Shown here in pieces: positions 2,998-26,359 of a DNA stretch of 64,000 nt; the first letter of the stretch is position 1; every line of letters begins with the position of its first letter. The stretch is taken from the NCBI RefSeq assembly GCF_001194135.2, contig NC_068991.1:8953927-9017926 (forward strand). The letters are read 5' to 3'. The notes beneath the pieces are model-generated. The model was not told where the DNA came from and did not search any database. It worked only from the letters and a program-made list of their open reading frames with translations. This stretch comes from Octopus bimaculoides (taxonomy: Eukaryota). Both the position numbers and the translations under genes were made by a program.

Positions 2998-4052
2998 CTC
3001 TTTTACTTGTTTCAGTCATTTGACTGTGGCCATGCTGGAGCACCGCCTTTAGTCGAGAAATTCGACCCCAGGACTTATTNNNNNNNNNNNNNNNNNNNNN
3101 NNNNNNNNNNNNNNNNNNNNNNNNNNNNNNNNNNNNNNNNNNNNNNNNNNNNNNNNNNNNNNNNNNNNNNNNNNNNNNNNNNNNNNNNNNNNNNNNNNNN
3201 NNNNNNNNNNNNNNNNNNNNNNNNNNNNNNNNNNNNNNNNNNNNNNNNNNNNNNNNNNNNNNNNNNNNNNNNNNNNNNNNNNNNNNNNNNNNNNNNNNNN
3301 NNNNNNNNNNNNNNNNNNNNNNNNNNNNNNNNNNNNNNNNNNNNNNNNNNNNNNNNNNNNNNNNNNNNNNNNNNNNNNNNNNNNNNNNNNNNNNNNNNNN
3401 NNNNNNNNNNNNNNNNNNNNNNNNNNNNNNNNNNNNNNNNNNNNNNNNNNNNNNNNNNNNNNNNTCTACCAAATCCACTCACAAGGTTTTGGTCGGCCCG
3501 AGGCTATAGTAGCAGACACTTGCCCAAGGTGCCACACAGTGGGACTGAACCCCGAACCATGTGGTTGGTAAGCAAGCTACTTACCACACAGCCACTATAT
3601 ATATATATATATATATACTTGCTCGCATACATACACTTTAACATATTAAGAGTGTAACATGGCTGTAGTATGATGTAATGGTGTAGATGTTTTATTCTGA
3701 GATGTGGGCTGGGAAAATATATTCTGAGATAATTGTACTTCATACAAAGAGAAACAGAAAGCCATTTGTATTACCTGTTCGTTTTGTCAGAAACACCTGT
3801 CTCTTGTATAATTTCATGTTGCGGTTTGCTGGAGAGTGTCAGATACTGGTCCGGCTTCTCTCTGCCAAGGAAAATATCACAATGCATCAATGAACGTTCC
3901 TTTTCCAGCTTTTTTTTACTCCCCACACTCTGTCTCACTCCATATGTGTGTGTGTGTGTGTGTGAGTATAAATATCTATATATGTAAAAATGCATGTATA
4001 TATATATGTGTGTGTATATATGTGTGTGTGTATATATATATATATATTCGTT

Positions 4053-4167: not shown

Positions 4168-5123
4168 NNNNNNNNNNNNNNNNNNNNNNNNNNNNNNNNN
4201 NNNNNNNNNNNNNNNNNNNNNNNNNNNNNNNNNNNNNNNNNNNNNNNNNNNNNNNNNNNNNNNNNNNNNNNNNNNNNNNNNNNNNNNNNNNNNNNNNNNN
4301 NNNNNNNNNNNNNNNNNNNNNNNNNNNNNNNNNNNNNNNNNNNNNNNNNNNNNNNNNNNNNNNNNNNNNNNNNNNNNNNNNNNNNNNNNNNNNNNNNNNN
4401 NNNNNNNNNNNNNNNNNNNNNNNNNNNNNNNNNNNNNNNNNNNNNNNNNNNNNNNNNNNNNNNNNNNNNNNNNNNNNNNNNNNNNNNNNNNNNNNNNNNN
4501 NNNNNNNNNNNNNNNNNNNNNNNNNNNNNNNNNNNNNNNNNNNNNNNNNNNNNNNNNNNNNNNNNNNNNNNNNNNNNNNNNNNNNNNNNNNNNNNNNNNN
4601 NNNNNNNNNNNNNNNNNNNNNNNNNNNNNNNNNNNNNNNNNNNNNNNNNNNNNNNNNNNNNNNNNNNNNNNNNNNNNNNNNNNNNNNNNNNNNNNNNNGT
4701 GGGTGCTTTTACGTGTCACCCGCACGAAAACGGCCACGCTCGAAATGGTGTCTTTTATGTGCCACCCGCACAGAGTGAAAAAACTACAGAAGGCTTGTGT
4801 TACATGGTTAAAGTATATATTTAAATTATGTCAGAAAAATGTTATAAGATCTTTTTGGTATATAAACATTGTATTTTGATAATTTAAATATATACTTTAA
4901 CCATGTAACACAAGCCTTCTGTAGTTTTTTCACTCTTATTATCTTTTATACATTCAACCACATGCTTTCACATACCAACTTTCTCACCCTATATATATAC
5001 ATATATATATGTATATTCTCAACTCTCTGTCTCACTCGATATATGTATGTGTGCATGTGTGTATAAATATAAATATGTGTGCATGTGTGTACACATATAT
5101 GTATTTATCATAGTGATTTCGTT

Positions 5124-7188: not shown

Positions 7189-9436
7189 TGTGTGGATGTG
7201 GATGTGATTTTCTTTATGTGATTTTCTTCATCCTTGGTAAATACACTCTGATAGCCAGTATTTGCAAGAGTGCTAACTGAGGAACCAGCTCGAATTTGTT
7301 AATCATCCTCTTATTTGGTATGTATGTATGTATGTATGTATGCATGTATGTATGTATGTATGTATGTATGCATGTTATGTATGTATGTATGTAAGCATGT
7401 ATGTATGTATGTATGTATGTATGTATGTATGTATGTATGTATTGAAGGTGACTCTTTGTACTGAACTCCGAACATGTAATTTTAAAAATCAAAATCACAT
7501 AATTACATAGGTTATATATAGCATATATGTTGCCTCTTTATCACTCTAATTCAAAAACATGAAAGATTTATATCAAAATTGGATTTTATATTTATACACG
7601 ATGTGTGTGTGTGTGTGTGCACGTGCATTTGATGTTTGTGTATGTTTATGTATCTACACTATATTTTTGAAGTGAATACATATCCATACTCATAAATGCA
7701 CACACAACACACACACACACATTTGAAGGAAAATTATTTTAAGTCTTCTCAAATATGAGTTAATTAATTCTGTCCAGAATATATTTCTAGCCTTGCTCTA
7801 AACAAATTTCGGTTTTATTACATTCAGATTTATTTAATTAGCTCATATGGTCAATGCACACACATAGTCTCTCACAAACACAAACACAAACATGGGCACA
7901 CACACACACATGTATATGTATGTGTGTGTATATATACGATCACACACATGCAAATACATACACACACATATAATATATATATATAAAAACATACATATAC
8001 ATACATACATACATACATACATTCATACATATATACATACATATTTGTGTGTGTGAATATATATATATTTATATATATATATATATAGGTTGTAATATTT
8101 TTTTGTCATGCACTAAATGGGAGATCTACATTGCCAGGTAGTTTATTTTTAATTTTCTTTGATATACAAAATACCTGATTGAAAATATGTATGGTTCTGA
8201 TGATATAACCTCTAAACTGAATCGCAGCCAATTTGGACAAAACAATGTATTATATCTTTGATTTGGAGCAAAACTAATAATATATTCTAGAGTAGAGCTA
8301 ATTAATGTAGGTATAAATTGATATTTGTTCATACATATATATATTTATATACACACATATATATATATATATAACAATACACACACATACACACGTAACT
8401 GCGTGATAAGAAGTTTGCTTCACAACCACATGATTCTGGGTTCTGTCCCACAGCATGGTACCTCAGGATATTGTCTTCTACTTTAACCCTGGGCTGATGA
8501 AAATCTTGTGAGAAGATTTAGCAGATGGAAACTGAAAGAAGCCTGTCATATATGTGTGTGTATTTGTGTGTGTGTGTGTAGTAAAATAAAACGAGCATTA
8601 GAATAGTGAGCCATAGTGTGCAAAAGAGAAGACTGCATTGGGAGGGAGATGTGATGCATTTGAAAAATTGAAATTTGGATGAAGATGAGTTAAACAACTC
8701 AAGTGACAGGAACATTCAGAAGAGGAAAACTAGAAAATGTGGGATTAAGTGCTGAACGCTTTTGATCTCAGATGCTGAACTTCAGAACAGAGACGATGCC
8801 AGGGTACTGCAATAGACTGAAGTGAATAGACACTATGATAGAGCAGGTCCATCATCATATGTCAGCACTGGAAAAATGGACATAAAATGATGAAAACTGA
8901 TAGAGTTTCATTTCTAAAGATGACGTTAATAGTTTGAAAAATTATTTTATCTTATTGATGACTCAGACAACACTCAAACAAGAAATAACATATCTATTTG
9001 TACTGTTTTAATTGTGAGTATGAAGGAAACAAAGAGAGACAAATTAGTTGTAAATCGGGAGATTTGAGGTAAAAAAAATTTCATTAGCAACCAGATTACC
9101 GTTTGTACACGGCTGTATGTGATTAATCCAGTTATTTCTTTATATTATAAATGTTCCAGTCTTGCAGAGTTGAATGGCGATGGTTATAAAACTTGAGAGT
9201 TTCTTAGGTTGAGTATATATGATTTGTTTAAGGCAGAGATTATTGACTGTGATAGCAAAGAGTTGTGTATCGGAAGCGCTGTCTATCGGGGATGTGGTTG
9301 TGGTGCTGGTGGTGGAGCTGTGGCAAGTAGGCTTGGGATCAATTCTTAAATAAAGTAACCTGCTCTGTTCTAGGTTTGAGAGCATTACAGATGGCACTTA
9401 GGAAGTTATCTTATCTATCAATGTACTTATGTAAGA

Positions 9437-9480
<44 letters not shown>

Positions 9481-9959
9481 ATGCGTGCGCATGTTGTAAT
9501 ATGTGTGTGTGAATGTTTATGTTTGACTGTGTTTGTGTGAATGTATATGTATTAATGTATTTGCATGACGATGTGTTCGTACGAGTGTNNNNNNNNNNNN
9601 NNNNNNNNNNNNNNNNNNNNNNNNNNNNNNNNNNNNNNNNNNNNNNNNNNNNNNNNNNNNNNNNNNNNNNNNNNNNNNNNNNNNNNNNNNNNNNNNNNNN
9701 NNNNNNNNNNNNNNNNNNNNNNNNNNNNNNNNNNNNNNNNNNNNNNNNNNNNNNNNNNNNNNNNNNNNNNNNNNNNNNNNNNNNNNNNNNNNNNNNNNNN
9801 NNNNNNNNNNNNNNNNNNNNNNNNNNNNNNNNNNNNNNNNNNNNNNNNNNNNNNNNNNNNNNNNNNNNNNNNNNNNNNNNNNNNNNNNNNNNNNNNNNNN
9901 NNNNNNNNNNNNNNNNNNNNNNNNNNNNNNNNNNNNNNNNNNNNNNNNNNNNNNNNNNN

Positions 9960-10015
<56 letters not shown>

Positions 10016-10166: not shown

Positions 10167-10681
10167 TGTGCGCGTGTGCGTATGCATGTGTGAATATGAC
10201 TCAGTTTATGTGATTGTTTTTGTGTGACTCTGATGTGACTGTGAGAGAAACAGATATCTCAAAATCTGTTTCAAAGAATTTTAAGATTTAACCTTTTAGC
10301 ATTCAAATTACTCTGTCAAATTTGATACTTATTAAGGGTTAACGAATATTGAAGAAGGAGAAAAAGAAGAAGAAGAAGAAGAAGAAGAAGAAGAAGAAGA
10401 AGAAGAAGAAGAAGAAGAAGAAGAACAACAACAACAACAACAATCCTTTCTATTAAAGGCATAAGGCCTGGAATTTTTGGGGAGAGGACTGGCCAGTTAC
10501 ATCGACCTCAGTGTTTACTTAATTTATCAACCCTGAAAGGATGAAAGGCAAAGTCGACCTCAGTGGAATTTGAACTCAGAATGTAAAGATGGGTGAAATA
10601 CCGCTAAGCATTTTGCCCAGCATGCTAACGATTCTGCCAGCTTGCCATCTTAAACAACAACAACAATAACAATAATATGTG

Positions 10682-10712
<31 letters not shown>

Positions 10713-11971
10713 TTGTACACATGTATGCATGCATAATAATGAAGTTATTGTATGCAGTATTCAGGTGCCACAGCAACTTGTTAGATAAAGGATAAAAGAG
10801 AGGACAAAAAGCATGAATGAGTCAAGTAAAATGTAAAAAAAAAAACAAACAATGAAAGCTAAAAATGCATGTGAACATTCCACGGAATAAAACACATAAA
10901 AAAAAAAGAAAAGAAAGCAGTAAAAGAGCCACACACACACACACACATGAGCGCCCCTCCCTGCACATCTATAGTGAATGAATGTAAAAGTAATCTAATG
11001 TCAATTCTATGCTAATCTTTACCCTGGTGACTGAATGATGAAATATTACAACAGTTACACAATTACCTGTTGTGCAATTATTCAATTGATATGAATAGAC
11101 AGGTAAGGTGACGAACTGTCAAAATCCTTACCTTGTTGGACAAAGTAATAAGTGGCACATCTTCCGAATTCACATTCTGAGTTCAAGCTCCTCCAAGGTT
11201 GATTTTGTCTTTCATCCTTACGGGGTCAATAAAATATGTACCTGCTGAAAACTGGGGGTCTATGCAATTGGCTTACTCCTCCTCTAAAATTACTGGCCTT
11301 GTGTCAAAATTTGAAACCAGTATGTGTAAACAAATAATAGACCTAATCTAATAATGATAGAGGATTTAGTCAACTTTTATTACTTAATACATCATCATCA
11401 TCACCCTGTGTTTTAAATCCGGGTTTTCTCCCCATTAATCTACCTCAATGTCATAGCAACTGAGGTAGCCAGGTGCAGCCTACTCCAACCTTTGGGCTCC
11501 AGCATGGCTACAGTTAAATGATTAAAACAAGTAAAAGATAAAGGATGTTAATGAAAGTATTGTGCCCCTTTGTTCATTTATAAGTAGTCGTAAAACTTGC
11601 CCTTTCTGCATGTTGCTTTTTAATGTTCACTTTCCATTTTGTCTAGTATGTTGTGAACTTTCACTTTACCTTCAGCCTTAGAAAAGCTTTTACTTTCACC
11701 AATCTGTCCTGCTATATGTGTACTGCTTTTTCAACCACACAAGGAAGTAAAATAAGATAAAGCATAGTTCATATAGCTTAATCTGCTTTCCTTTGATAAA
11801 TGTAACTAGGGTAAATTCTAAGCTTACGTCATTCAATTTTTTAAAGAAACAAACAATTATGCTTCAGATTTGTATATTTAATAGTTTTTCTAGAATACCT
11901 ACACATGAGCTGCCCTCCCTCTAAGGGCATAAGCTCTCTCACCATGACAAGGTAGTACCGGGGTAGCTGCC

Positions 11972-11975
11972 TGCA

Positions 11976-12018
<43 letters not shown>

Positions 12019-12040
12019 AGGCATTTTGGCTACCTTAAGA
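11972..12040 (-). rRNA. Dispersed 28S rRNA fragment (47 bp) plus a 22-bp duplicate of its R2-target portion
   Basis: Minus strand reads CTCTCTTAAGGTAGCCAAATGCCTCGTCATCTAATTAGTGACGTGCA, one mismatch from the conserved eukaryotic LSU sequence as recalled. Not a functional gene. Confidence 0.9.
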
Positions 12041-12679
12041 CAGACTTTGTTTCCTCATAACATTCAGAAAAATAGATGTTTTTAAACAAAGCTTTCTACA
12101 AATGCCTTTCAGATGGTATAGATTGCGATTATATAGGAATTTATGAAAAAAAAACATTGGTGAGCACTCACATACACAGGCACATCACATATATATCTAC
12201 AAAATACAACTTGAAATTTTGAAAACATTGTCTCAGAATGTGTGAACACCCACCAATTTTTTTTTTTTTTTTTCTCTATAAATTTCGATATAATCACAAT
12301 CAACACCACCTGAAAGGTATTTGTAGAAAGTAAAACAAAAATATCCCCCATTTTTAATATTTGCTGCTTTAAATTCGCAAAAATTTCCCCAAAATACCAA
12401 AAAGTTAGAAAGAGTTATGACGGGTTAAATGATGTGCTTCGATCAGAACTTCGTTAAAAGCCCGTAGTAATTAAATATTTGTGTGTATGTGTATGTATAC
12501 TCTTTTAACTCTGGAGCACCGCCTTTAGTCGAGAAAACCGACCCCAGGACTTATTCTTTGGATGCCTAGTACTTATTCTATCGGTCTCTTTTGCCGAACC
12601 GCTAAGTTACGGGGACGTAAACACACCAGCATCGGATGTCAAGCGATGTTGGGGGGACAAACACAGATACACACATACA

Positions 12680-12713
<34 letters not shown>

Positions 12714-12929
12714 CATATATACGACGGGCTTCTTTCAGTTTCCGTTTACCAAATCCACTCACAAGGCTTTGGTCGGCCTGAGGCTATAGTAGAAGACACT
12801 TGCCCAAGGTGCCACGCAGTGGGAATGAACCCGCAACCATGTGCTTGGTAAGCAAGCTACTTACCACACAGCCGTCTGTCCCTCACTACCGCTTGACAGT
12901 CGCTGCTGGTTTGTTTGCATCCCATAACT

Positions 12930-13140
12930 GGTACTACTAAAGCAGAGTGGTCCCGAACGCGCACCCGCGCAGTCGCGCGTCCGCACTAGCTAGTCGTGCG
13001 TGGTCGATCCTAACCCTAACCCTAACCCTAAACACATGTATTCATTTGCGCACGCGCACTTTTTGTAGGATCGACCACTCACGACTAGCTAGCGCGGACG
13101 CGCGACTGCGCGTTCGGGACTACTCTACTTTAGCAGTACC
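12930..13140. mobile_element. Merlin/IS1016-like MITE, 211 bp
   Basis: TIRs of 83 and 75 bp beginning GGTAC; 9-bp TSD CCCATAACT (12921-12929 and 13141-13149); (TAACCC)3 in the spacer. Confidence 0.8.
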
Positions 13141-13299
13141 CCCATAACTTAGATGTTCAACGGAAGAGACCGACAGAATAAGCACCAGGCTTTGAAAACA
13201 ATAAGTACTAGGATCGATTCGTTTAGCTGAAACCCATTAAAGCAGTACCCCCTCCCACCACCACTACCACCACCGCCGCCACAACAACAACACAGCCGC

Positions 13300-13700
13300 A
13301 GTTCGATGGCTAAAACAAGTAAAAGATAAACGGTTAATAGAAAGAAGAGTTCTGACAATAGTTTCGTTAAGTATCCGGGCATTACCTCCGCTTGATTCGG
13401 CGCATGCGCATAAGAGGGCACATGTTGTGCTTCTGCCGCCGCCGCCGCCGTCATAGTGATTGAGTCATTTAAAGCCGACAAGCAGACATTTGATTTGGAT
13501 TGGAACACGTCGCTAGAATATTTTGGTGTTCAATCCCGATCGAACACGCCAACAACAAACACTTCCTCAACTATCGAAAGTACCGTTTAAGTAATTCCAT
13601 TACATATATATTCAGTGAACACCTGAAATCATTCGAACAATTATTTTCTGAAACCCTGTTGCTTAAAAAAAAACAAAAAACATTTAGGTAAGTCTTTTAT
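13300..13700. promoter_or_regulatory. CpG-rich, probably bidirectional promoter
   Basis: CpG retained from about 12.9 to 16.4 kb; (GCC)n; NRF1-type palindrome GCGCATGCGC at 13400-13409; outward-facing donors at 13385 (-) and 13688 (+, AG|GTAAGT). Confidence 0.55.
13386..13454 (-). CDS. Candidate first coding exon (MTAAAAAEAQHVPSYAHAPNQAE)
   Basis: ATG with A at -3, poly-Ala N-terminus, donor GAG|GTAATG, inside the CpG-rich island. Confidence 0.4.
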
Positions 13701-16700
13701 AGGATTATCTCTTTTGTCTATGTATATATACACTCATCTGTTTTTTCTGTTATCGGATGTAAGTTGTTGTTTAACCCCAACTAAGCCTTGATCGAGCTGA
13801 CTGAGTGAAATACGATCAAAGTCTTCCCAGCCGTGACTATCCCATCTGTAGTGGATATCTAAGACTACGCTATCTGATGTATCCTTCCATTTACTGAGAT
13901 TGATTGCATGCATTTGGAGTGGGATTTGGTTGCTATTTCTTTTAAATCGAGCAGCCGTTCTCTGTTGTGACCGGGCCGGATTCATACAAGTTTTCGTTAA
14001 TCATACAAAAAACCCTGCATGGACAGCAATTAAGTATCTCCCTTTGAAAACAACAAAACAAAAATTTCAAACGAAGGTAACAGAAATCATCTACGATGTG
14101 TGGATGGTTTTCTTCGTTGAATATCAAAGCGTATGTCTTGACAACCTGGACAGCTTTATGCGGTTAATCAAATATGTGAGGCACGAGTTTTCTTGGTACT
14201 AGTTAGAAAACGAGATATTTAGAAATCACGAGTGTTTTTATGCAATTTACTGGTGGTGTGTGTTCGTTGCTTTGTCGCATTGTGTGATGTGTGAGCCCTT
14301 CTCTGTTTAAAAATCTGTTTTGTGTGTGTATTTTACACCTAACACTTAAAAAAGCTTATAATGTGCCGTAACCCGTTTAGCGAACAACGAACAGCGCATA
14401 CTAATTCAGTGAACCGACAAAAGGTTGAAAATACATGCAGTTGATAGGCAATTACAACAGTTTATGTTGCAGACAAATATAGACAAGAGTATCTTGTGAA
14501 GACAAAGAAGACTCTGGTACGGATATTATTGGTATAACTGCTTTATTCTTACTATGTTAAGCATCCCTTGACAGCTGAAGCTGTCCGCATTATGTCTAAA
14601 ACAAGCCGATCGACCTCCTTAACAAATGCAACATGTCCTTTTATAACTTTTTTCGCGGCTTGCTTTCGATTTTTAGTTGAAGCAATATAGTACTTATGTC
14701 GCTGACACGAAAAGCATAAAAGTTACATAGTCTTGATCCCCACTTCAGCTCTATAAATTAAGAGGATCTTCTTTAAGAAGAAATCATGAATGTTTCTCTT
14801 TATCTTTTCATTATACATCGATTTTTCCACTTCGATTCCTAATTGGTGTCGCTTCACTTGTGTTGCTTGAGCCCTTATTGGAAAGCATGATCGTCACTGC
14901 ACCACCGTTCCCCTGCGCTCACTCGATAATTTTTGTCAATGGTTGAAAATATTGTCGAGTAAAATGCTGTTTCGATAGATTGCATCATCTCTTCTCCCAA
15001 CGAGTTCACACGTCTGTTACACTTTCCGCCTTCACACACGAGTCAATGAGGGAACTTTCCATAGTCGCTCGACTCGCTAAAAACAGCGGTCAAATTTCTA
15101 GAAAAAAAAAAAGGGATTCGTTTAATGGGGCATGCGGTTCCCAACATATATGAAAAGGGACTGAGCTAGCGCTAAACAATACCTTCACAATACAACTCTT
15201 GTAACTAGCTTTCGTTTTGCGATCAAGAAAACTTTTTTTCTTTTGACTTATGTTAATAATACTCTTGAGAATTTGGACGTCACATTTTCATATTGTCCTA
15301 ATCTTTAGACAAACAAATGTTGAAGAAAGAGTTTTTTTGTATTCGTTATATTAGCACATCATAAACAGTGTGGAAAATAAAGCGCAAACCAATCTAAGGA
15401 TACGGCAAGAAATATCTGGATGCGTGATTACAGCGGCGTGTGTGTAACTAATTTTGTCATTTTTTGTTCTATGCTTTTAATATTGAAGACTTACGATCAA
15501 TAGGCTTCCAGTCAGAACTAATCAGTCTTTTTAGAGGTATCTTAAAAACATTATTCACTATGTTCCCCCTTTTCACGACAATGTGATTTAAAGGACGTAA
15601 GGCTGCTATTTCTAGCAGTTTGAGAAACTACAAGCATAAGAGTTCAATGGCCTGCTGTTTAATGACTGTGAAGATGTTTTGTGTGTGAATGTAACGTTTG
15701 CCTATTCTTATTTGAATAACGAAATTGTTCACTTAAATATTGTCTCGATTTTCCAATCCGTTCATGGATCTCTCTCACATACACACACATATACACAAAT
15801 AATATCCTTAATCTTTTCAATTAGCTCTCGACAGTCCTAAGTTTATATTCCCCTTTCACTTTTGTCAGTCAAACGATACAAGTTGCTGATCGACAGTGAG
15901 TGAAAGTGCCATGTTAAATTGCAGTATCACCTTGTCTCTTTTTTGCTTGTTTTTTTATTTTTTTGTGCGTCAGTTCGTCCCTTTGTACGGAATCAGTTTC
16001 TGACTAGCATCGTATATGAGAAAGCAACACCCTACTACGATTGATCCAGTTTCGCTTCTCTCACTTCTTTTTGCAATATTCCGTTCTCTCTTCTAAAACT
16101 AGTGCCGTGAAAACAGATTACTATTCCGTCAAAATTACATTCGCTCGACGAGAAGCTCGTATAAACTGATATAAGTTCAGAGTAGTTGTACTGGAAGATA
16201 TAAACAAAGTATTCTCGATGAAATATTCCCCTGGTTGAAGTTTAAAAAAAAATTAAAAGATACACTCCTGGGGGACTCCCAAAGAAAAGGGGAGGTAATT
16301 TCAAGGAATTGAGAATTAATCTCAAAATTAATTTAATTGAAAATGTGATCATTGTTTGGTGGTATTAGACAGATGAAGGCATGTTTTGATATCGTTGGAC
16401 ATCAACAGCATAGTACAGTTTCTGCAAAACAACGGTGTCGGTATTTTAGAGGCATAACATCACGAATACATGTTTAGAGTTAGGTTATTGGTTTGACTTT
16501 TCAACTCCAATACCATTATATAAATTCGATGTTTCTAAACTGTCTTTTTAAAGATTCTTTTATAGTATTCACATTATTGAAAGCATTGTTTCTGTTAGTA
16601 TTGTAGACTTTCGATCTCAACATATCGTTTCTTTGTGTCTCAACCTTGTCAAATACTGAGGCTGGTTTAATCAACTGTACCACACCCCTTGAACTAATTA

Positions 16701-17362: not shown

Positions 17363-20305
17363 TCATACCAGTTTACAAACAAATGGATGATTCGGAACGT
17401 TCAGAGTTATAACCTTAATTTTCTTTATGCTGATGATGAGGTACACTCTCTGCATTTATTAGAGAACTGCCTTTGCCAGTGTAAAAGGTAAAGAATTCAT
17501 AGGGCTGGTTTTCTAGGGCCTGTGGTGTCTATATCCCACCTGGACAGGACACCAGTCTGTCACATAATCACTCATTTTTGCCAGCTGAGTGGACTTGAGA
17601 ACTGTGAAGTGAAGTGTTTTGTTCAAGATCAATGCATTGCACACTCCAGGAATCAAAACCACAATCTTATGATTGTAAATTCAACACCCTAACCACTGAG
17701 CCATGCACCTCCACTTTACCAATGTAGTTCAGAGGACAACAAAAGCAGTTTATCTGGTACCAGTTTGGTTATAGGAGTTGCTAGAGAAACTGTCACAAAA
17801 ACATATCTTACCACCTGCAAAGCTCTACTCAGATATTTCTGTCAATCTAAGATTTATTTTAATCTTATACTGTTTCCAGTACTTACAGAACAGTGATACT
17901 ATTTGATCTGTAGCTGGAGTGTGTGTGGGGACTGTTGATAGGTGTTAGGTTATGATTAAACACTGGTAGCCAACATGTTAGGTCACTGATAAGCCCTCGG
18001 TTCATTAAACCTGGGACTGAAGGAGCCTCAGGTTCAGTGTGAAGAGGGAGAAGAAAAGGCGCAGATGTGGCTATGTGGTAAGAAGTTCTGGGTTCAGTGT
18101 CACTGATACATGAGAAAATACTAATTTCTGAATTTGCTATCATCATCATCATCATAATCATCATTTAATATCTATTTTCCATGCTGCTATGGGTTGAATG
18201 GCTTGACAGAAGCTGGTAAGGGCAGGGGCTACACCAGGCTCCATTGTCTGTTCTGGCATGGTTTCTATGGCTGGATGCCCTTCCTAATGCCAACCACTTT
18301 ACAGAGTGTACTGGGTGCTTTTTATGAAGCACCAGCACCACTACTTTTTACATGGCACCAATGCTTTTTACATGGTACCATCACTGGTGCTTTTAATGTG
18401 ACACCAGTATCGATTCTGCCAGATGCCTTGGTCTTTGTTTTATAAAGAAAAATTATAACCCATGTTCATGCGCACGTGCACACACACACACACACACGGA
18501 GCTTCCTCAACACATGGCTTTGTGAAGTGCTGCTATATATACATAACCACAAATATATTCATCATATAAGCAATGCTCACTGGATATTACACAAAATTTC
18601 TGTTGTGCAACAAGTACATAGCAATACGCCTATAATCGGACATCATTCAACGATTAGATAATCTTATAAACCAGCTGGGAATATATGATGTAGTTGATGA
18701 ACGTGAGGTTGCTAAACATGAGGGGAATTGGGGGTGGATGAATGGAAATTATGTTCCATATTTGGAAATTGCACTATCAATGGTAAAGTCAATATCCTCA
18801 TCATTATTGCCACTATCATTACATTTATGGGTTTTTTTTTTTATCGGCATCATAATCACCATTAGTGGACACACAGCATTCATCAATAAATCATTATGCC
18901 AGACAGCCACACTGCTCGAAACACCGAATATTCTGTGTATGATGGATTCTACATGATGAAGTACAAACACTGTTTTTACTGGTCTATAGACTTATAAAAA
19001 AGTCTATTAAACATTTTGTTACTAACCCACCTGAGAATGTTCTTGTCCCGGTAACACCAAGTGTAATATATTTTCATGCATTTACTCATTAAAATTTGAG
19101 GTTAAGACCAAATTAAATACCAAGTTGCTGCTTCCATACTAAATCATTTTTTTAAAAACCAAATAGTTTGTTCACATTTTACTTCATTTTTATATTGGAT
19201 TTACAAATTGTTGACGTGAAAGTTGCAAACAGCTTCAAAAGAACTTTAACAAATAACTAATTGATTAACTTGCACATTAAACAAACGATCAGTTAGTTGG
19301 TTTGATAATTAATTAACAATAAAGAAGTAGAGTTGAATCTGTGTATGTGTTGTTATTGGCATAATGACTCTCACAAGACACAACAAAATTTATTCAAATT
19401 TACCCAGATGTAAAGTATCAGATGCAACCCACAGGCAGGGTTGCCATTTGGTACCTTTTCATTTCAGATTATCAACCTTGATTGAGCAAAACTATGGTCC
19501 AAAATGTTTCTGCTATGATCCTCGTATCTTTTTCCTGACATGTGCATAACTAAAGTGCTTTTTTAAGATCTTTTTAATGCAGAGTGTAATTTGAGGGAAA
19601 TTTGGCTTCTGTTTTTAGGGGGTTTTATTAATCACATAGAAACTTCCTTATTGGGCTTACTCATTTCGTGCTATTGTGGGGCAATGTTCAGCTGTGGCAA
19701 GGAGCAGTGTATTGTGGATTCATAATATGATAAAAGTCAGTTCATGTATTCAACTGATCACCATAGAAATCTTTGTATTTTAACTGTACTTAGTATTTAT
19801 GCTTCATTAATTTCCCACTGTATTGAAGACATTTTTTTCTATATTGAGGTCTTTATTTTTATTTGTCATTCTTTCACTTGGGAAAGTGTTCCACTTGGCT
19901 GTATTTGCTTGTGTAAATAGCAAAAGCGTTTGTATGACCACGGTAATTCACTGAAGCAAAGAATATTTTTAATTTGTGCATATGTATGCTTTGTACTGAG
20001 TATGCAACAAATGCTCTGTGTCTACAAACTACGTTTAGTTGTAGAATAAGTTTGCTTGAAAACCTGCTACTTACACATAGTTGTCCAGTAGGTAAGAGAT
20101 ATTATATATGTTTTAGGTTACAGTCCCACCTTATTTACTTACTATGAGTGATAGATATAGTTTCTTGATGATAGATGTGGTTGTATTAAACCCCAAAACA
20201 ACATAAAGGTACATCCATCCTTTTTTTTTAATAGTTTGTCTAGAACTACACTGTCTATAACAGTGATGATAGGGTATGGTTTAGAAGACTTGCCTTCTAT
20301 TTTAA

Positions 20306-20526
20306 CCCTTATGATACCAATCTGCCTGAAACTTCTCTGGCTTAGGAGTACAAATGTCTTGTTTTCAAAAGTTCCGAATTAAAATCTTCCACCAAACCTT
20401 AGTCACAATTTATGTTCCTAACACTAGCTTAATGATAACTAAGTTATTTTACTAAATTCTTTGTTATATTTTAAATTAATTGAAAGAAACACAGAGCAGC
20501 TCAACAGAAATATGGTAACAAAAGGG
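20306..20526. mobile_element. piggyBac-like MITE
   Basis: TTAA|CCCTTATGATACCA ... TGGTAACAAAAGGG|TTAA. Confidence 0.75.
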
Positions 20527-20599: not shown

Positions 20600-20804
20600 C
20601 CCCTTCAGTTAATCTATTTGTCGAAATGTATTCTCCTTGTCTTAATCAATTTTGAAAACAATGACAAATTTAGTAAAATAATTAAGTTAATGTTTGAGAC
20701 ATAAGATGAAATTTTGAAGGAAGGTTTTAATTTAGATCTCTTTTAAGTAGGGAAATTGTATCAGAGAACCACAGATGTTCTCAGGCAGTTTGGTATCAAA
20801 AGGG
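20600..20804. mobile_element. piggyBac-like MITE, same family, opposite orientation
   Basis: TTAA|CCCC ... GGTATCAAAAGGG|TTAA; its right end is the reverse complement of the left end of the 20306 copy. Confidence 0.65.
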
Positions 20805-20905
20805 TTAAACTTCATTTTATATCCATTAATAAATAACCTTGGGAGCCACTTGCACATTAATTTCATGAGCAGGCTTTTCCATTGGCTGGCTCTACTGGAA
20901 CACAC

Positions 20906-22465: not shown

Positions 22466-23255
22466 TAGATTAGCATTACATTTGACACAGTAATCCGAGT
22501 GCTGAAGAGTGAAAAACAAAACTCGTAATATAATTTTCAGCCGATGGTGATTTATAGTCATTTTGTTTATTTTACATGATTTGTCAGTAGATAAGAAATC
22601 TGTTTTTGTCAATCTACATAACTTAAATAATTGTGTGTGTGTGTGTGTGTTGCATTCTTGTTTGAGCTGCCTTTGCCATTCAACAACTGTATGTAGCTCT
22701 TTTCTCACAAGCTATACAGGTATAAGTGTTAGTACCCTGGAAAATGTCATCAGCATGGTGTAACTCACTGCTCCGCAACCAGTATGTCACAGCACACTGG
22801 TGTGCCACGAGGCGATGCGAGGGGTGCCGCGAGGTGTGCCACAATATCCTTAATATAACTTTTAGTTCAAGTGTATTGCCCAATTTTGCAAAGAATATAA
22901 GCGTACTGCGTGTGAAAAAAAGGTGAACTGGTATAACTAAAATTTCTCAATGTTACAGTTTTGTTTTTAAAAAACTGTTTTATCATTCTGATACATTTAT
23001 ATTTGAATACATTTGCTGTACTTATTTATAGTTCTTTAAGTATTAGTGGCATTTTGTATGTTTCTGTGGTCTGAGTTCAAATTCCACTTAAGTCGACTTT
23101 GCCTTTCGTCTTTTGGGATTGATAAAATAAATACCAGTTGAATACTGAGGTTGATTCGACTAAAAAATTCTTCAAGGTGGGGCTCCAGCATAGACAGTCT
23201 AATGACTGAAAGAAGTAAAAGATAACAAAAAATAAAATATAATTCATTAATTATA

Positions 23256-23645
23256 GGCGTAGGAGTGGCTGTGTGGTAAGTAGCTTGCTTATGAACCACA
23301 TAGTTCTGGGTTCAGTCCCACTGCGTGGCACCTTGGGCAAGTGTATTCTACTATAGCCTCGGACCGACCAAAGCCTTGTGAGTGGATTTGGTAGACGGAA
23401 ACTGAAAGAAGCCTGTCATATATATGTATATATATATATGTTTGTGTGTCTGTGTTTGTCCCCCCAACATTGCTTGACAACTGATGCTGGTGTGTTTATG
23501 TCCCCGTAATTTAGCGGTTCGGCAAAAGAGACCGATAGAATAAGTACTAGGCTTACAAAAGAATAAATCCTAGGGTCGATTTGCTTGACTAAAGGTGGTG
23601 CTCCAGCATGGCCGCAGTCAAATGACTGAAACGTGTAAAAGAGTA
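23256..23645 (+). mobile_element. tRNA-derived SINE family A, near full-length copy
   Basis: A/B-box-like head TGGCTGTGTGGTAAG...GGGTTCAGTCCC and an internal (TA)n. Other copies at about 2727(+), 3003-3596(-), 8400(+), 12498-12872(-), 24605-24852(-), 26730(+), 27075(+), 35240(-), 43030(+), 52330(+), 59030(+). Confidence 0.85.
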
Positions 23646-26359
23646 ATTGGTATCGTTTTTCTCCCCCCCTCCCTCATTGCTCATTTATTTCCTGTTATAG
23701 CGATGTTGCCTGTATTAGTTATATTAGCACAACCATCTCATGTGCCATGCCTACAGGCGTAAGCGAGCGATTATGGATTTTTATGTCAAAGTCTGAAGAC
23801 CATAACTTTCTCTTGGAAAAGATACAGAAATGGTTTCTTTTTGTTTTCTGCCTGTTTATTAAATAGTTTGCTCTGTTACCCCACTTCTCTCTTGTGCTGA
23901 CTCTTGAGAAATAGGGCCTGTTTAATCCTAAAGCAAAGGGACTAGTTCCTGTGACACTGAGACATGTGCACACACTGGTGGACCTGTATAACTGGTATCT
24001 AGGGCCCAGCCATCTGGGATTTGTGTGATTTAGTCACAGGACCATCTTCTGCTATTTGACCAATAACTGAAGTCCTTGAGCTACACTGCTGCCCCAGTGC
24101 CAGAGCTCTCCTGGAAGTGGCAGTAGTTAAGGCATAATTCATACTTTCCATAACTGCTGAGCGTCCAAGCTGGAGCCTTGCTACTGGATACAGGTAACTG
24201 TCTTGGTCATGACAAAACAGATAAGGAATTATTGCAAGGAAATGAATTTACAAAGATCTATTTGATGTGCAATGTCAACTTATAAGAAAAGTTAGAAAAA
24301 TGCAGGGGTACATATATATATATATATATATATATANNNNNNNNNNNNNNNNNNNNNNNNNNNNNNNNNNNNNNNNNNNNNNNNNNNNNNNNNNNNNNNN
24401 NNNNNNNNNNNNNNNNNNNNNNNNNNNNNNNNNNNNNNNNNNNNNNNNNNNNNNNNNNNNNNNNNNNNNNNNNNNNNNNNNNNNNNNNNNNNNNNNNNNN
24501 NNNNNNNNNNNNNNNNNNNNNNNNNNNNNNNNNNNNNNNNNNNNNNNNNNNNNNNNNNNNNNNNNNNNNNNNNNNNNNNNNNNNNNNNNNNNNNNNNNNN
24601 NNNTTGTCAAGCGATGTTGGGGGGAAAACACAAACACACAAACATATACACACACATACATACATATATATATATATATACATATATACGATGGGCTTCT
24701 TTCAGTTTCCGTCTACCATATCCATTCATAAGGCTTTGGTCGGCCCAAGGCTATAGTAGAAGACACTTGCCCAAGGTGTCACACAGTGGAACTGAACCCA
24801 GAACCATGTGGTTGGTAAGCAAGCTACTTACCACACAGTCACTCCTGCGCCTATATATGAGTGTGTATGCATGTTAGTATAATATGAATTGTTAAAGACT
24901 ACGTAGCAGGAATTTATAATGTTACAATAATTTAATTTGTCCACCTACACAACTAACATGCTTACTAGTGTGTGTCTAGGTTTGTAGTATATTGTTGTTG
25001 TTGTGGTGGTGGTGGTGGTGGTGGTGGTGGTGGTAGTGTTTGTGTGTTAAATATGTAATAACTCTCTATTAGATATATAATGTGTGCATATGTTTTGCAG
25101 TTGCTATGGCAACATATCTGTAGCCATCATTAGTATATCATATCCATGTTGCTACCCTCCCCTATCCACTATTCAGGCAGGCAAGGGAGCTAAACAACAA
25201 AGACCAATAAAATGAGGGGACTACTGTGTGGTCACGTGACTGCCTGGGAATAACAGTAACGTCTCCCTATTGTCTTAGAAAAAGGGGAAAATATTTAGAA
25301 TAATGTTGTCTACCATTACTTGCTTAATGAAAAAAAAAACAAAGGGCGAGGATGGTCAAGGCTGGAATGCCTTTAAATGGTGCTCACTTGGAGCTAAAGA
25401 ACAATGGAGACTTAGAGCTGTATTTTATAGATGGATCTTAAGTGAGCGAATAACTAGCTATTAAGTCTCTTTCTCTCTCTCCCTCCCTCTCTCTCTCCCT
25501 CCCTCCCTCTCTCTCTCTCCCTCTCTNNNNNNNNNNNNNNNNNNNNNNNNGTACAACAGTAAACAACAACAAACTTAAACTATCAGAAATGAAAAAAAAT
25601 AACAAGAAAGAAAAAAAAAATAAAGAAACCAACAAATTCTTGATAATTATTGATTAATATTTTTTTTCTCTCCTTTTTTCCTCCTCCTTCCATCTCCAAG
25701 AGGAAATTAATATTTTGGTGTAACTTTACATGTAATTTTACCAGATATAATTTGCAATTCATTAATGTTATATCAGTATAACAACAACAACAACAACAAC
25801 AGGAACAGCAAAATTAACAGGGAAATAAAAAAAACAAAAAATCGTAGATAGCACCGCCACCACCACCACCACTTATTATAGTATTACAGCTCGTTGATTT
25901 TCATTTGAATAAGAACCCAAGATAGTTATGTAGAGAGTGCATAACATCTTGTTCTCATAATATATATATAATAGATATGCCTTAATTATTAACAACTGAG
26001 GCTGCTAGGGAGCTCGTTACCATCATCTGAAGTAACTTCGTTTCTGATTAATTCTGTTCAGATCCAATATAGATTATTTGATTTTGTAGTTAGTTTCCTG
26101 ATGATTCATCTAAACTCAACTCCACACATCTCATCAGTGTGTTTTAAAGCGATAGCCAAAGATGGCCTTCAGCTTTTACTGGAATTTATTCATCTTCATC
26201 TTATGTTGAGGTCAACATTGTTTTTGCTGTTGCCCTTTCATTGAACTTTCAATATTACTGAAACAGTTCGTTAAGCTTTTGGAACTCGAATTATCCGTCA
26301 TAGAATAGATTTTAAGCCACTGAAGGAAATCTCATCCTTGTAGCTAATACAGGAAATCA

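Follow-up and report, generated by a model that had tools for sequence, protein, structure and literature searches.

A short, partly duplicated 28S rRNA fragment spanning the R2/I-PpoI site in a GC-rich island outside rDNA

In the 64,000 nucleotides analyzed here (the window, numbered from its first letter), a short piece of 28S rRNA sequence lies in AT-rich DNA, and the part of 28S that it represents contains both the insertion site of R2 retroelements and the I-PpoI site. The question raised by this locus is whether the piece was left behind by R2-type target-primed reverse transcription or template jumping, as the first-pass annotation of the sequence proposed, or whether it is a stray copy of rRNA-derived sequence that happens to include a famous site.

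The 47-bp minus-strand match to the large-subunit rRNA described in that annotation was confirmed by two kinds of search. When a 28S segment was used as the blastn query, the minus strand of 11972-12018 (aligned as 12018-11972) was identical to eukaryotic LSU rRNA at 46 of 47 bases, with E=1e-17. In Rfam, model positions ~2265-2315 of LSU_rRNA_eukarya (RF02543) aligned to 11972-12019 on the minus strand with 32.7 bits and E=1.3e-6 in a search of a 171-nt stretch alone. This score was under the gathering score because the match is only 48 nt long, as expected, and in Rfam searches of 2 kb and of 64 kb the match was lost to speed filtering. Relative to the R2 nick, the match covers 28S positions -11 to +36, and both the Rfam and blastn alignments place the ends of the 28S homology at -11/-12 on one side and +36 on the other. 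On the rRNA structure, this segment runs from helix 69 (its 3' strand) through the hairpin of helix 71. The sole difference from 28S in the 47-base match is GACGCGCA>GACGTGCA at 11975, a CpG>TpG transition, and a 19-nt core is matched exactly, for which the chance expectation is nil (0 of 100 shuffles). The full I-PpoI site and the R2 insertion point were both present as the annotation had stated: the I-PpoI 15-mer CTCTCTTAAGGTAGC is intact at 12004-12018 (minus strand), and the R2 nick (TTAAGG/TAGCC) falls between 12008 and 12007. The stretch 11972-12019 on the minus strand, supported by RF02543, blastn, and the exact 19-mer, consists of a T followed by 28S -11 to +36, and is referred to below as unit 2 with its continuation.

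Immediately upstream of unit 2 on the same strand, at 12020-12044, is a partial copy in tandem, 25 nt long and corresponding to 28S -12 to +12, TCTGTCTTAAGGTAGCCAAAATGCC, which was identified by Tandem Repeats Finder, a repeat search, and direct reading, and is referred to as unit 1. Tandem Repeats Finder reported an array at 11994-12044 with a period of 25, 2.1 copies, and 92% matches, and the separate repeat search recovered 20 nt of the duplicated unit at 95%. Compared with 28S, unit 1 has one substitution and an additional A, and its equivalent of the R2 nick, between 12033 and 12032, is intact. The alignments thus bear out a captured 28S piece that is centered on the R2/I-PpoI site and partly duplicated, and the second copy of the target core is real and abutting according to Tandem Repeats Finder, with a length of 24-25 nt in place of the 22 originally given.

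Read directly, the minus strand from 12044 to 11898 consists of unit 1, unit 2 with its continuation, and an adjoining flank, in the form (acaaag) TCTGTCTTAAGGTAGCCAAAATGCC / TCTCTCTTAAGGTAGCCAAATGCCTCGTCATCTAATTAGTGACGtGCA / GGCAGCTACCCCGGTACTACCTTGTCATGGTGAGAGAGCTTATGCCCTTAGAGGGAGGGCAGCTCATGTGTAGG (tattctag...), where the slashes separate the three parts. The junction between unit 1 and unit 2 has a 2-nt microhomology (..GCC/TC), and 28S +13,+14 are also TC. By direct reading, the junction between 28S and the flank at +36 is GCA/GGCAGC, with GCA(G) common to both sides. The 2-4 nt of microhomology at both internal junctions is of the kind left by template switching or by microhomology-mediated end joining. 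Additionally, the repeat unit and the 28S homology begin within one base of each other, a coincidence that plain slippage inside the 47-nt fragment would produce roughly 1 time in 12-24. An extension of the 28S sequence upstream of unit 1 (-12..-19) was also considered, where 5 of 8 bases match and the blastn alignment reaches 12051. It was not significant, and it was rejected because so poor a match clashes with the low divergence elsewhere in the insert.

The flank joined to 28S +36, named Y1, is a 74-nt segment of about 57% GC delimited from the GC profile at 11898-11971 on the minus strand. Together, the two 28S units and Y1 form a sharply bounded island of ~147 bp (11898-12044) with 43-57% GC, set in surroundings of 20-33% GC in the same profile. 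No origin was found for Y1: an Rfam search at E<=10 assigned it to no family, metagenome contigs scanned twice for exact patterns gave no match, and a protein-level search with the overlying 47-aa ORF returned no candidate. Since Y1 matched no template, the patchwork is only half demonstrated. The similarity of Y1 to 28S was not significant in either orientation. Blocks resembling CTCTCT..AAGGTAG occur on the plus strand of Y1, and the possibility that Y1 is a diverged direct or inverted copy of the 28S core was dropped after Smith-Waterman comparison against shuffles (p = 0.04-0.8). The hairpin proposed earlier for this flank (11907-11936) does appear in the minimum-free-energy fold of the sequence within Y1, and its stability is not beyond chance, with z-scores of +0.28, -0.17, and -0.71 against shuffles. 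The proposed dispersed family of such fragments also found no support, as neither the 28S core nor Y1 recurs elsewhere within the 64-kb window.

No clear case of a poly(A) tail or target-site duplication was found around it. The only candidate target-site duplications were A-rich, low-complexity 12-mers at 11838-11849 and 12079-12090, and the sequences beside the island at 11835-11853 and 12046-12064 form 19-nt imperfect inverted repeats of low-complexity A/T. Both sets of candidates were set aside as unconvincing, being low-complexity A/T sequence.

Three weak similarities to parts of the locus were found elsewhere in the window. A decayed second copy was considered at 10943-10975, where a 20-mer with 2 mismatches is accompanied by GATGTGCA, which resembles a doubly deaminated GACGCGCA. 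The blastn-short E-value was 0.35, and the extended alignment was carried mostly by the 20-mer and was treated as chance. The 20-mer itself is a near-repeat between 10943-10962 and 11901-11920, both on the minus strand, of the form AGGGAGGG(C/G)(A/C)GCTCATGTGT. It lies 958 bp downstream of the fragment on the same strand, with GATGTGCA before it and (TG)n after it, and it is at chance level (E=0.35), yet could conceivably represent a shared repeat terminus. A third core-like 19-mer at 31108-31126 on the plus strand, CTGAAGGCAGCCAAAAGCC, has 3 mismatches and flanks without 28S similarity, and was likewise attributed to chance. The AT-rich sequence immediately 3' of the island (GTGTAGGTATTCTAGAAAAACTATTAAA) contributes a 28-nt match between 11877-11904 and 20227-20251, both on the minus strand, with 86% identity and E=0.006-0.014. 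The latter site ends in A9, and the match may be a retroposon tail common to the two loci, with statistics that are marginal.

The window as a whole has a GC content of 36% and contains many microsatellites and several SINE-like and MITE-like families. It is interrupted by six N runs totaling 1713 bases (3080-3464, 4168-4698, 9589-9959, 24337-24603, 25527-25550, and 50624-50758), and therefore derives from a scaffolded draft assembly. The top-scoring inverted repeats, 9692-9986 versus 24309-24603, were discarded as an artefact of N aligned to N. No family reached its gathering score in an Rfam search of the whole 64 kb, ARAGORN called no tRNA gene in the window, the ten longest ORFs of the window had no Pfam match, and exact look-ups of four window ORFs returned no match. 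With conserved segments of 18S, 5.8S, 28S, and 5S rRNA as blastn queries, this locus was the only one found in the window. At Rfam gathering thresholds the 64 kb contain no rRNA gene, blastn with these segments gave no other rRNA piece, and the fragment therefore lies outside an rDNA unit or array.

An R2 cleavage product or co-transcript should begin or end at the nick. Both units instead carry 28S straight across the R2 nick (between 12008 and 12007, and between 12033 and 12032), and in neither of them does an element abut 28S at TTAAGG/TAGCC. This continuity counts against R2 and indicates that what was copied was mature rRNA or a 28S gene without an insertion. No trace of an R2 coding region was detected either: translations of 10440-14949 in all three minus-strand frames, in which X stood for stops, matched no Pfam family at E<=0.1, no remnant of a reverse transcriptase, endonuclease, or zinc finger was found near the locus on the 28S-sense strand, and no ORF of >=120 aa was found near the locus. 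A Pokey-type piggyBac insertion at the TTAA inside CTCTCTTAAGG was not observed, as the TTAA is uninterrupted in both units.

Next to the fragment is a palindromic MITE-like element at 12092-12331, which lies outside the 28S sequence by 47 nt. Its 63-nt arms (12092-12154 and 12268-12330) are 84% complementary, its termini are CTTTCTACAAAT.../...ATTTGTAGAAAG, and A-rich AAACAAA motifs are found on its flanks. Models of plant miRNA precursors matched this element below threshold (45 bits for MIR8562, whose gathering score is 211), and these matches were taken as spurious.

The presence of the well-known R2/I-PpoI site is not in itself evidence that R2 was involved. On the reading favored below, that the fragment falls at this site is a coincidence plus reader ascertainment, and the position weighs little because this stretch of 28S is one that readers readily recognize. 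R2-superfamily elements occur in cephalopods (PMC10294476), so with a cephalopod host an argument against R2 from the lack of any R2-like element in the species would not apply, and their occurrence still does not amount to a positive link. Of the original proposal of a by-product of R2-type target-primed reverse transcription or template jumping, an origin through a reverse transcriptase that jumped between templates is compatible with the locus, and the tie to R2 is not supported.

A further possible connection is through ribozymes, since upstream 28S may supply the P1 strand of R2 ribozymes, with cleavage falling 9-36 nt upstream of the insertion site, including position -13 in Nasonia (PMC3774820). 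A descriptor search following the R2 ribozyme criteria of that study was applied to 28S -12..-5 together with Y1. An HDV-like topology could be drawn, with P1 CTCTCTC/GAGAGAG, P3 ACC/GGT, L3 TTGTCAT, and P2 GGTACT/GGTATT. The same topology was also obtained in 79 of 1000 flank shuffles (7.9%), P1.1 is absent from the candidate fold, L3 is without the conserved G, and no HDV-like family was found in Rfam at E<=10.

Considering these results together, our tentative reading, to which we assign a probability of about 0.45, is that the island is a ~147-bp GC-rich patchwork representing a one-off capture of rRNA-derived sequence in AT-rich, repeat-rich non-coding DNA. On this reading, the insert would lie well away from any rDNA array and would have no function. 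The attributes of an rRNA pseudogene are present, namely similarity to rRNA, location outside the rDNA unit, and substitutions at universally conserved positions. Since these substitutions (at 11975 and in unit 1) fall on universally conserved rRNA positions, the fragment is non-functional. For the capture itself, we favor an RNA route, namely template switching by a reverse transcriptase onto 28S rRNA, with DNA filler capture and slippage as a close rival, and sequence alone does not separate the two routes.

Under the RNA route, a reverse transcriptase would have acted at a chromosomal break or nick, either in LINE-type target-primed reverse transcription or through cDNA capture in break repair. 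The Y1 template would have been copied first, followed by a switch through 3-4 nt of microhomology onto the abundant 28S rRNA at +36. Copying would then have proceeded to about -11, where re-annealing at +12 through the 2-nt microhomology would have allowed the same end to be copied again before the product was ligated into the chromosome. The insert would have been inert since then, with slight decay seen in the CpG>TpG change at 11975 and the two differences of unit 1. Against this account stand the lack of a clear poly(A) tail or target-site duplication, and also the boundaries: the start of the repeated unit and the end of 28S just past the hairpin ~36 nt beyond the R2 site might mark a defined RNA terminus, for instance one cut by the ribozyme of an element, rather than a random switch.

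The rival in which DNA was captured directly proposes that a piece of rDNA, chromosomal or extrachromosomal, was used together with Y1 as end-joining filler at a double-strand break, and that microhomology-mediated slippage, during repair or in later replication, gave rise to the 25-nt tandem repeat. In its favor are the GC-rich patchwork island, the TC microhomology that bounds the duplicated unit, the GCA(G) at the 28S/Y1 junction, the lack of a tail and of a convincing target-site duplication, and the simple 2.1-copy array of Tandem Repeats Finder. It is nevertheless judged unlikely, because slippage would put the unit start at the fragment end only ~1 time in 12-24, and because rRNA is far more abundant as a template than rDNA fragments. 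Rather more doubtful is a by-product of an rDNA-specific retroelement, a broadened form of the initial idea. In one version, the 28S sequence would be the co-transcript leader of an element inserted ~36 nt downstream of the R2 site (the R4 insertion site lies midway between the R2 and R1 sites), an HDV-like ribozyme would cut this leader ~47 nt upstream with P1 on 28S CUCUCU, and Y1 would represent the element's 5' end. In the other version, an R2-type element with its nick at about -11 would have brought the 28S along as flank. The tandem unit would in both cases be a 5'-junction duplication, formed when the cDNA end was joined without a heteroduplex. Such an origin would account for the start of both units at 28S -11/-12, and there are parallels in the 28S cleavage by R2 ribozymes 9-36 nt upstream (-13 in Nasonia) and in the 13-28-nt tandem 28S duplications at R2 5' junctions (PMC3774820), in a ctenophore R2 with flanking rDNA from 11 bp upstream of the canonical nick (PMC13188248), and in the hydra element R2Hm-B, which is shifted by 15 bp (PMC5035012). 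The drawable HDV-like topology points the same way, but it recurs in 79 of 1000 shuffles with neither P1.1 nor the conserved G of L3, and Rfam gave no HDV-like family. In addition, neither unit has its 28S interrupted at the canonical nick, the minus-strand frames of 10440-14949 hold no reverse transcriptase, endonuclease, or zinc-finger remnant, and the foreign sequence ends after 74 nt, which requires a 3' truncation that target-primed reverse transcription does not produce.

The remaining alternatives were considered improbable to differing degrees. The island could be one copy of a dispersed repeat (SINE, LINE tail, or MITE core) with an acquired 28S module, represented once in these 64 kb. 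Its plausibility, slightly below that of the retroelement by-product, comes from the 28-nt match of 11877-11904 to 20227-20251 (86%, E=0.006-0.014) followed by A9, from the 20-mer with 2 mismatches at 10943-10962, from the density of SINE-like and MITE-like repeats in the window, from the 19-nt imperfect inverted repeats beside the island (11835-11853 and 12046-12064), and from the existence of transposable elements with rDNA modules (PMC10946416). On the other hand, abundant families of the window recur 5-13 times, and no second 28S core or copy of most of Y1 is present in the 64 kb; the 20-mer is at chance level (E=0.35), the inverted repeats are low-complexity A/T, and the metagenome contigs and protein collection gave no matches. 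It would be a long shot for the locus to be the ectopic 5' end of an undescribed 28S-specific retroelement inserting ~36 nt downstream of the R2 site, with 28S -11..-5 as the HDV-like P1 strand ~47 nt upstream, or to belong to a family of scattered 28S decoys that R2-type enzymes can still nick; a cut ~47 nt upstream exceeds the 36 nt known for R2. Least probable of all, and very much so, is an assembly artefact in which high-copy rRNA or rDNA reads were threaded wrongly into a gap-rich draft scaffold. The six N runs and the great abundance of rDNA k-mers in read sets would allow for it, but the CpG>TpG change and the two changes in unit 1 are unexpected from rRNA reads, and the nearest gap (9589-9959) is 2 kb away.

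A one-off capture of rRNA-derived sequence agrees with types of sequence already on record. Pseudogenes and 'junk' DNA derived from rRNA are a listed known class (review PMC10946416), and in primates, sense chimeras of 28S and LINE-1 of 50-482 nt have been attributed to template switching by reverse transcriptase (bioRxiv 10.1101/2025.02.02.635956). Like such 28S retropseudogenes, rDNA orphons, and 28S-LINE chimeras (bioRxiv 10.1101/2025.02.02.635956; PMC10946416), the locus contains a short sense piece of 28S outside rDNA that is fused to unrelated sequence, mutated relative to functional rRNA, and inert; template switching by a reverse transcriptase is the origin proposed for both. It differs from the chimeras in that its partner Y1 is unmatched and in showing neither a LINE body nor a tail nor a clear target-site duplication. 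Within the primate range of 50-482 nt it is at the short end, with a 25-nt tandem repeat of its 5' half, and its host is an invertebrate-like genome instead of a primate.

Resemblances to R2 elements are more partial. The 13-28-nt duplications at R2 5' junctions (Eickbush et al. 2013, PMC3774820) share with the locus a sense 28S repeat of ~25 nt near the R2 site with a fixed start. In those junctions, the duplicated 28S stops where R2 is inserted and R2 comes next, whereas here it continues to +36 and gives way to the 74 nt of Y1, with no R2 present and outside rDNA. Similarly, 28S sequence near the site travels with the element in R2 with shifted junctions, as in the hydra R2Hm-B and several fish R2 whose 3' UTR contains 28S-like sequence (PMC5035012) and in the ctenophore element beginning at -11 (PMC13188248). 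The 28S-like parts of these are inside a recognizable R2, in contrast to a locus without element sequence or ORF. An rRNA-derived module within non-rDNA sequence is also found in SINE28 of mammals, which acquired a 28S-derived module, and in other transposable elements with rDNA modules (PMC10946416); these are multi-copy families with defined ends, whereas the present locus has one copy in the 64-kb window.

The event type is already known, and the locus looks like one more stray rRNA-derived fragment rather than an R2 footprint. Read in this way, it adds one more case of rRNA-derived sequence scattered in an animal genome and matters little. If many copies were to share the -11 and +36 boundaries together with the flank, they would suggest a new rDNA-specific element or an ectopic pool of R2-type targets, and either would bear on the escape of retroelements from rDNA and on the off-target risk of R2-based insertion tools.

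The repeat families that surround the locus showed their own patterns. The most abundant is a SINE-like family with the core GTTCTGAGTTCAAATTCCGCCGAGGTCGACTTTGCCTTTCATCCTTTCGGGGTCGATAAATTAAGTACCAG, which has at least 8 copies that are 60-89% identical, including those at 10516-10657 (minus strand), 11105-11272, 26407-26574, 32970-33174, 33428-33632, 42481-42715, and 46918-47152, among others. ARAGORN called no tRNA in these copies, and a literature search with the SINE sequence string returned no match. The family with this core is reminiscent of cephalopod SINEs.

A second family occurs in both orientations with 74-93% identity at 3465-3596, 8382-8580, 12557-12876, 23252-23459, 24648-24855, 26711-26886, 27069-27212, and 59019-59162, where one copy is ~500 nt from the 28S fragment. 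A short motif, TCTTTTACTTGTTT..CATTT.ACTG..GCCATGCTGGAGC, has ~13 occurrences, including one at 11496-11546. A foldback or MITE-like repeat was also observed, with inverted arms at 20301-20481 and 20644-20809 that are 68% identical and further copies at 48972-49151 and 46011-46089.

Two other features of the window have unusually high identity or are adjacent to assembly gaps. A 107-nt inverted repeat (35093-35199 and 61000-61106) is 99% complementary across arms 25.8 kb apart, which is unusually high for this window and may reflect a recent repeat pair or an assembly duplication. A tandem block of ~68-nt units extends over 50408-50974, where the segments 50476-50623 and 50759-50906 are 100% identical; these identical segments bracket the N gap at 50624-50758, and they are probably a collapsed or gap-filled satellite.
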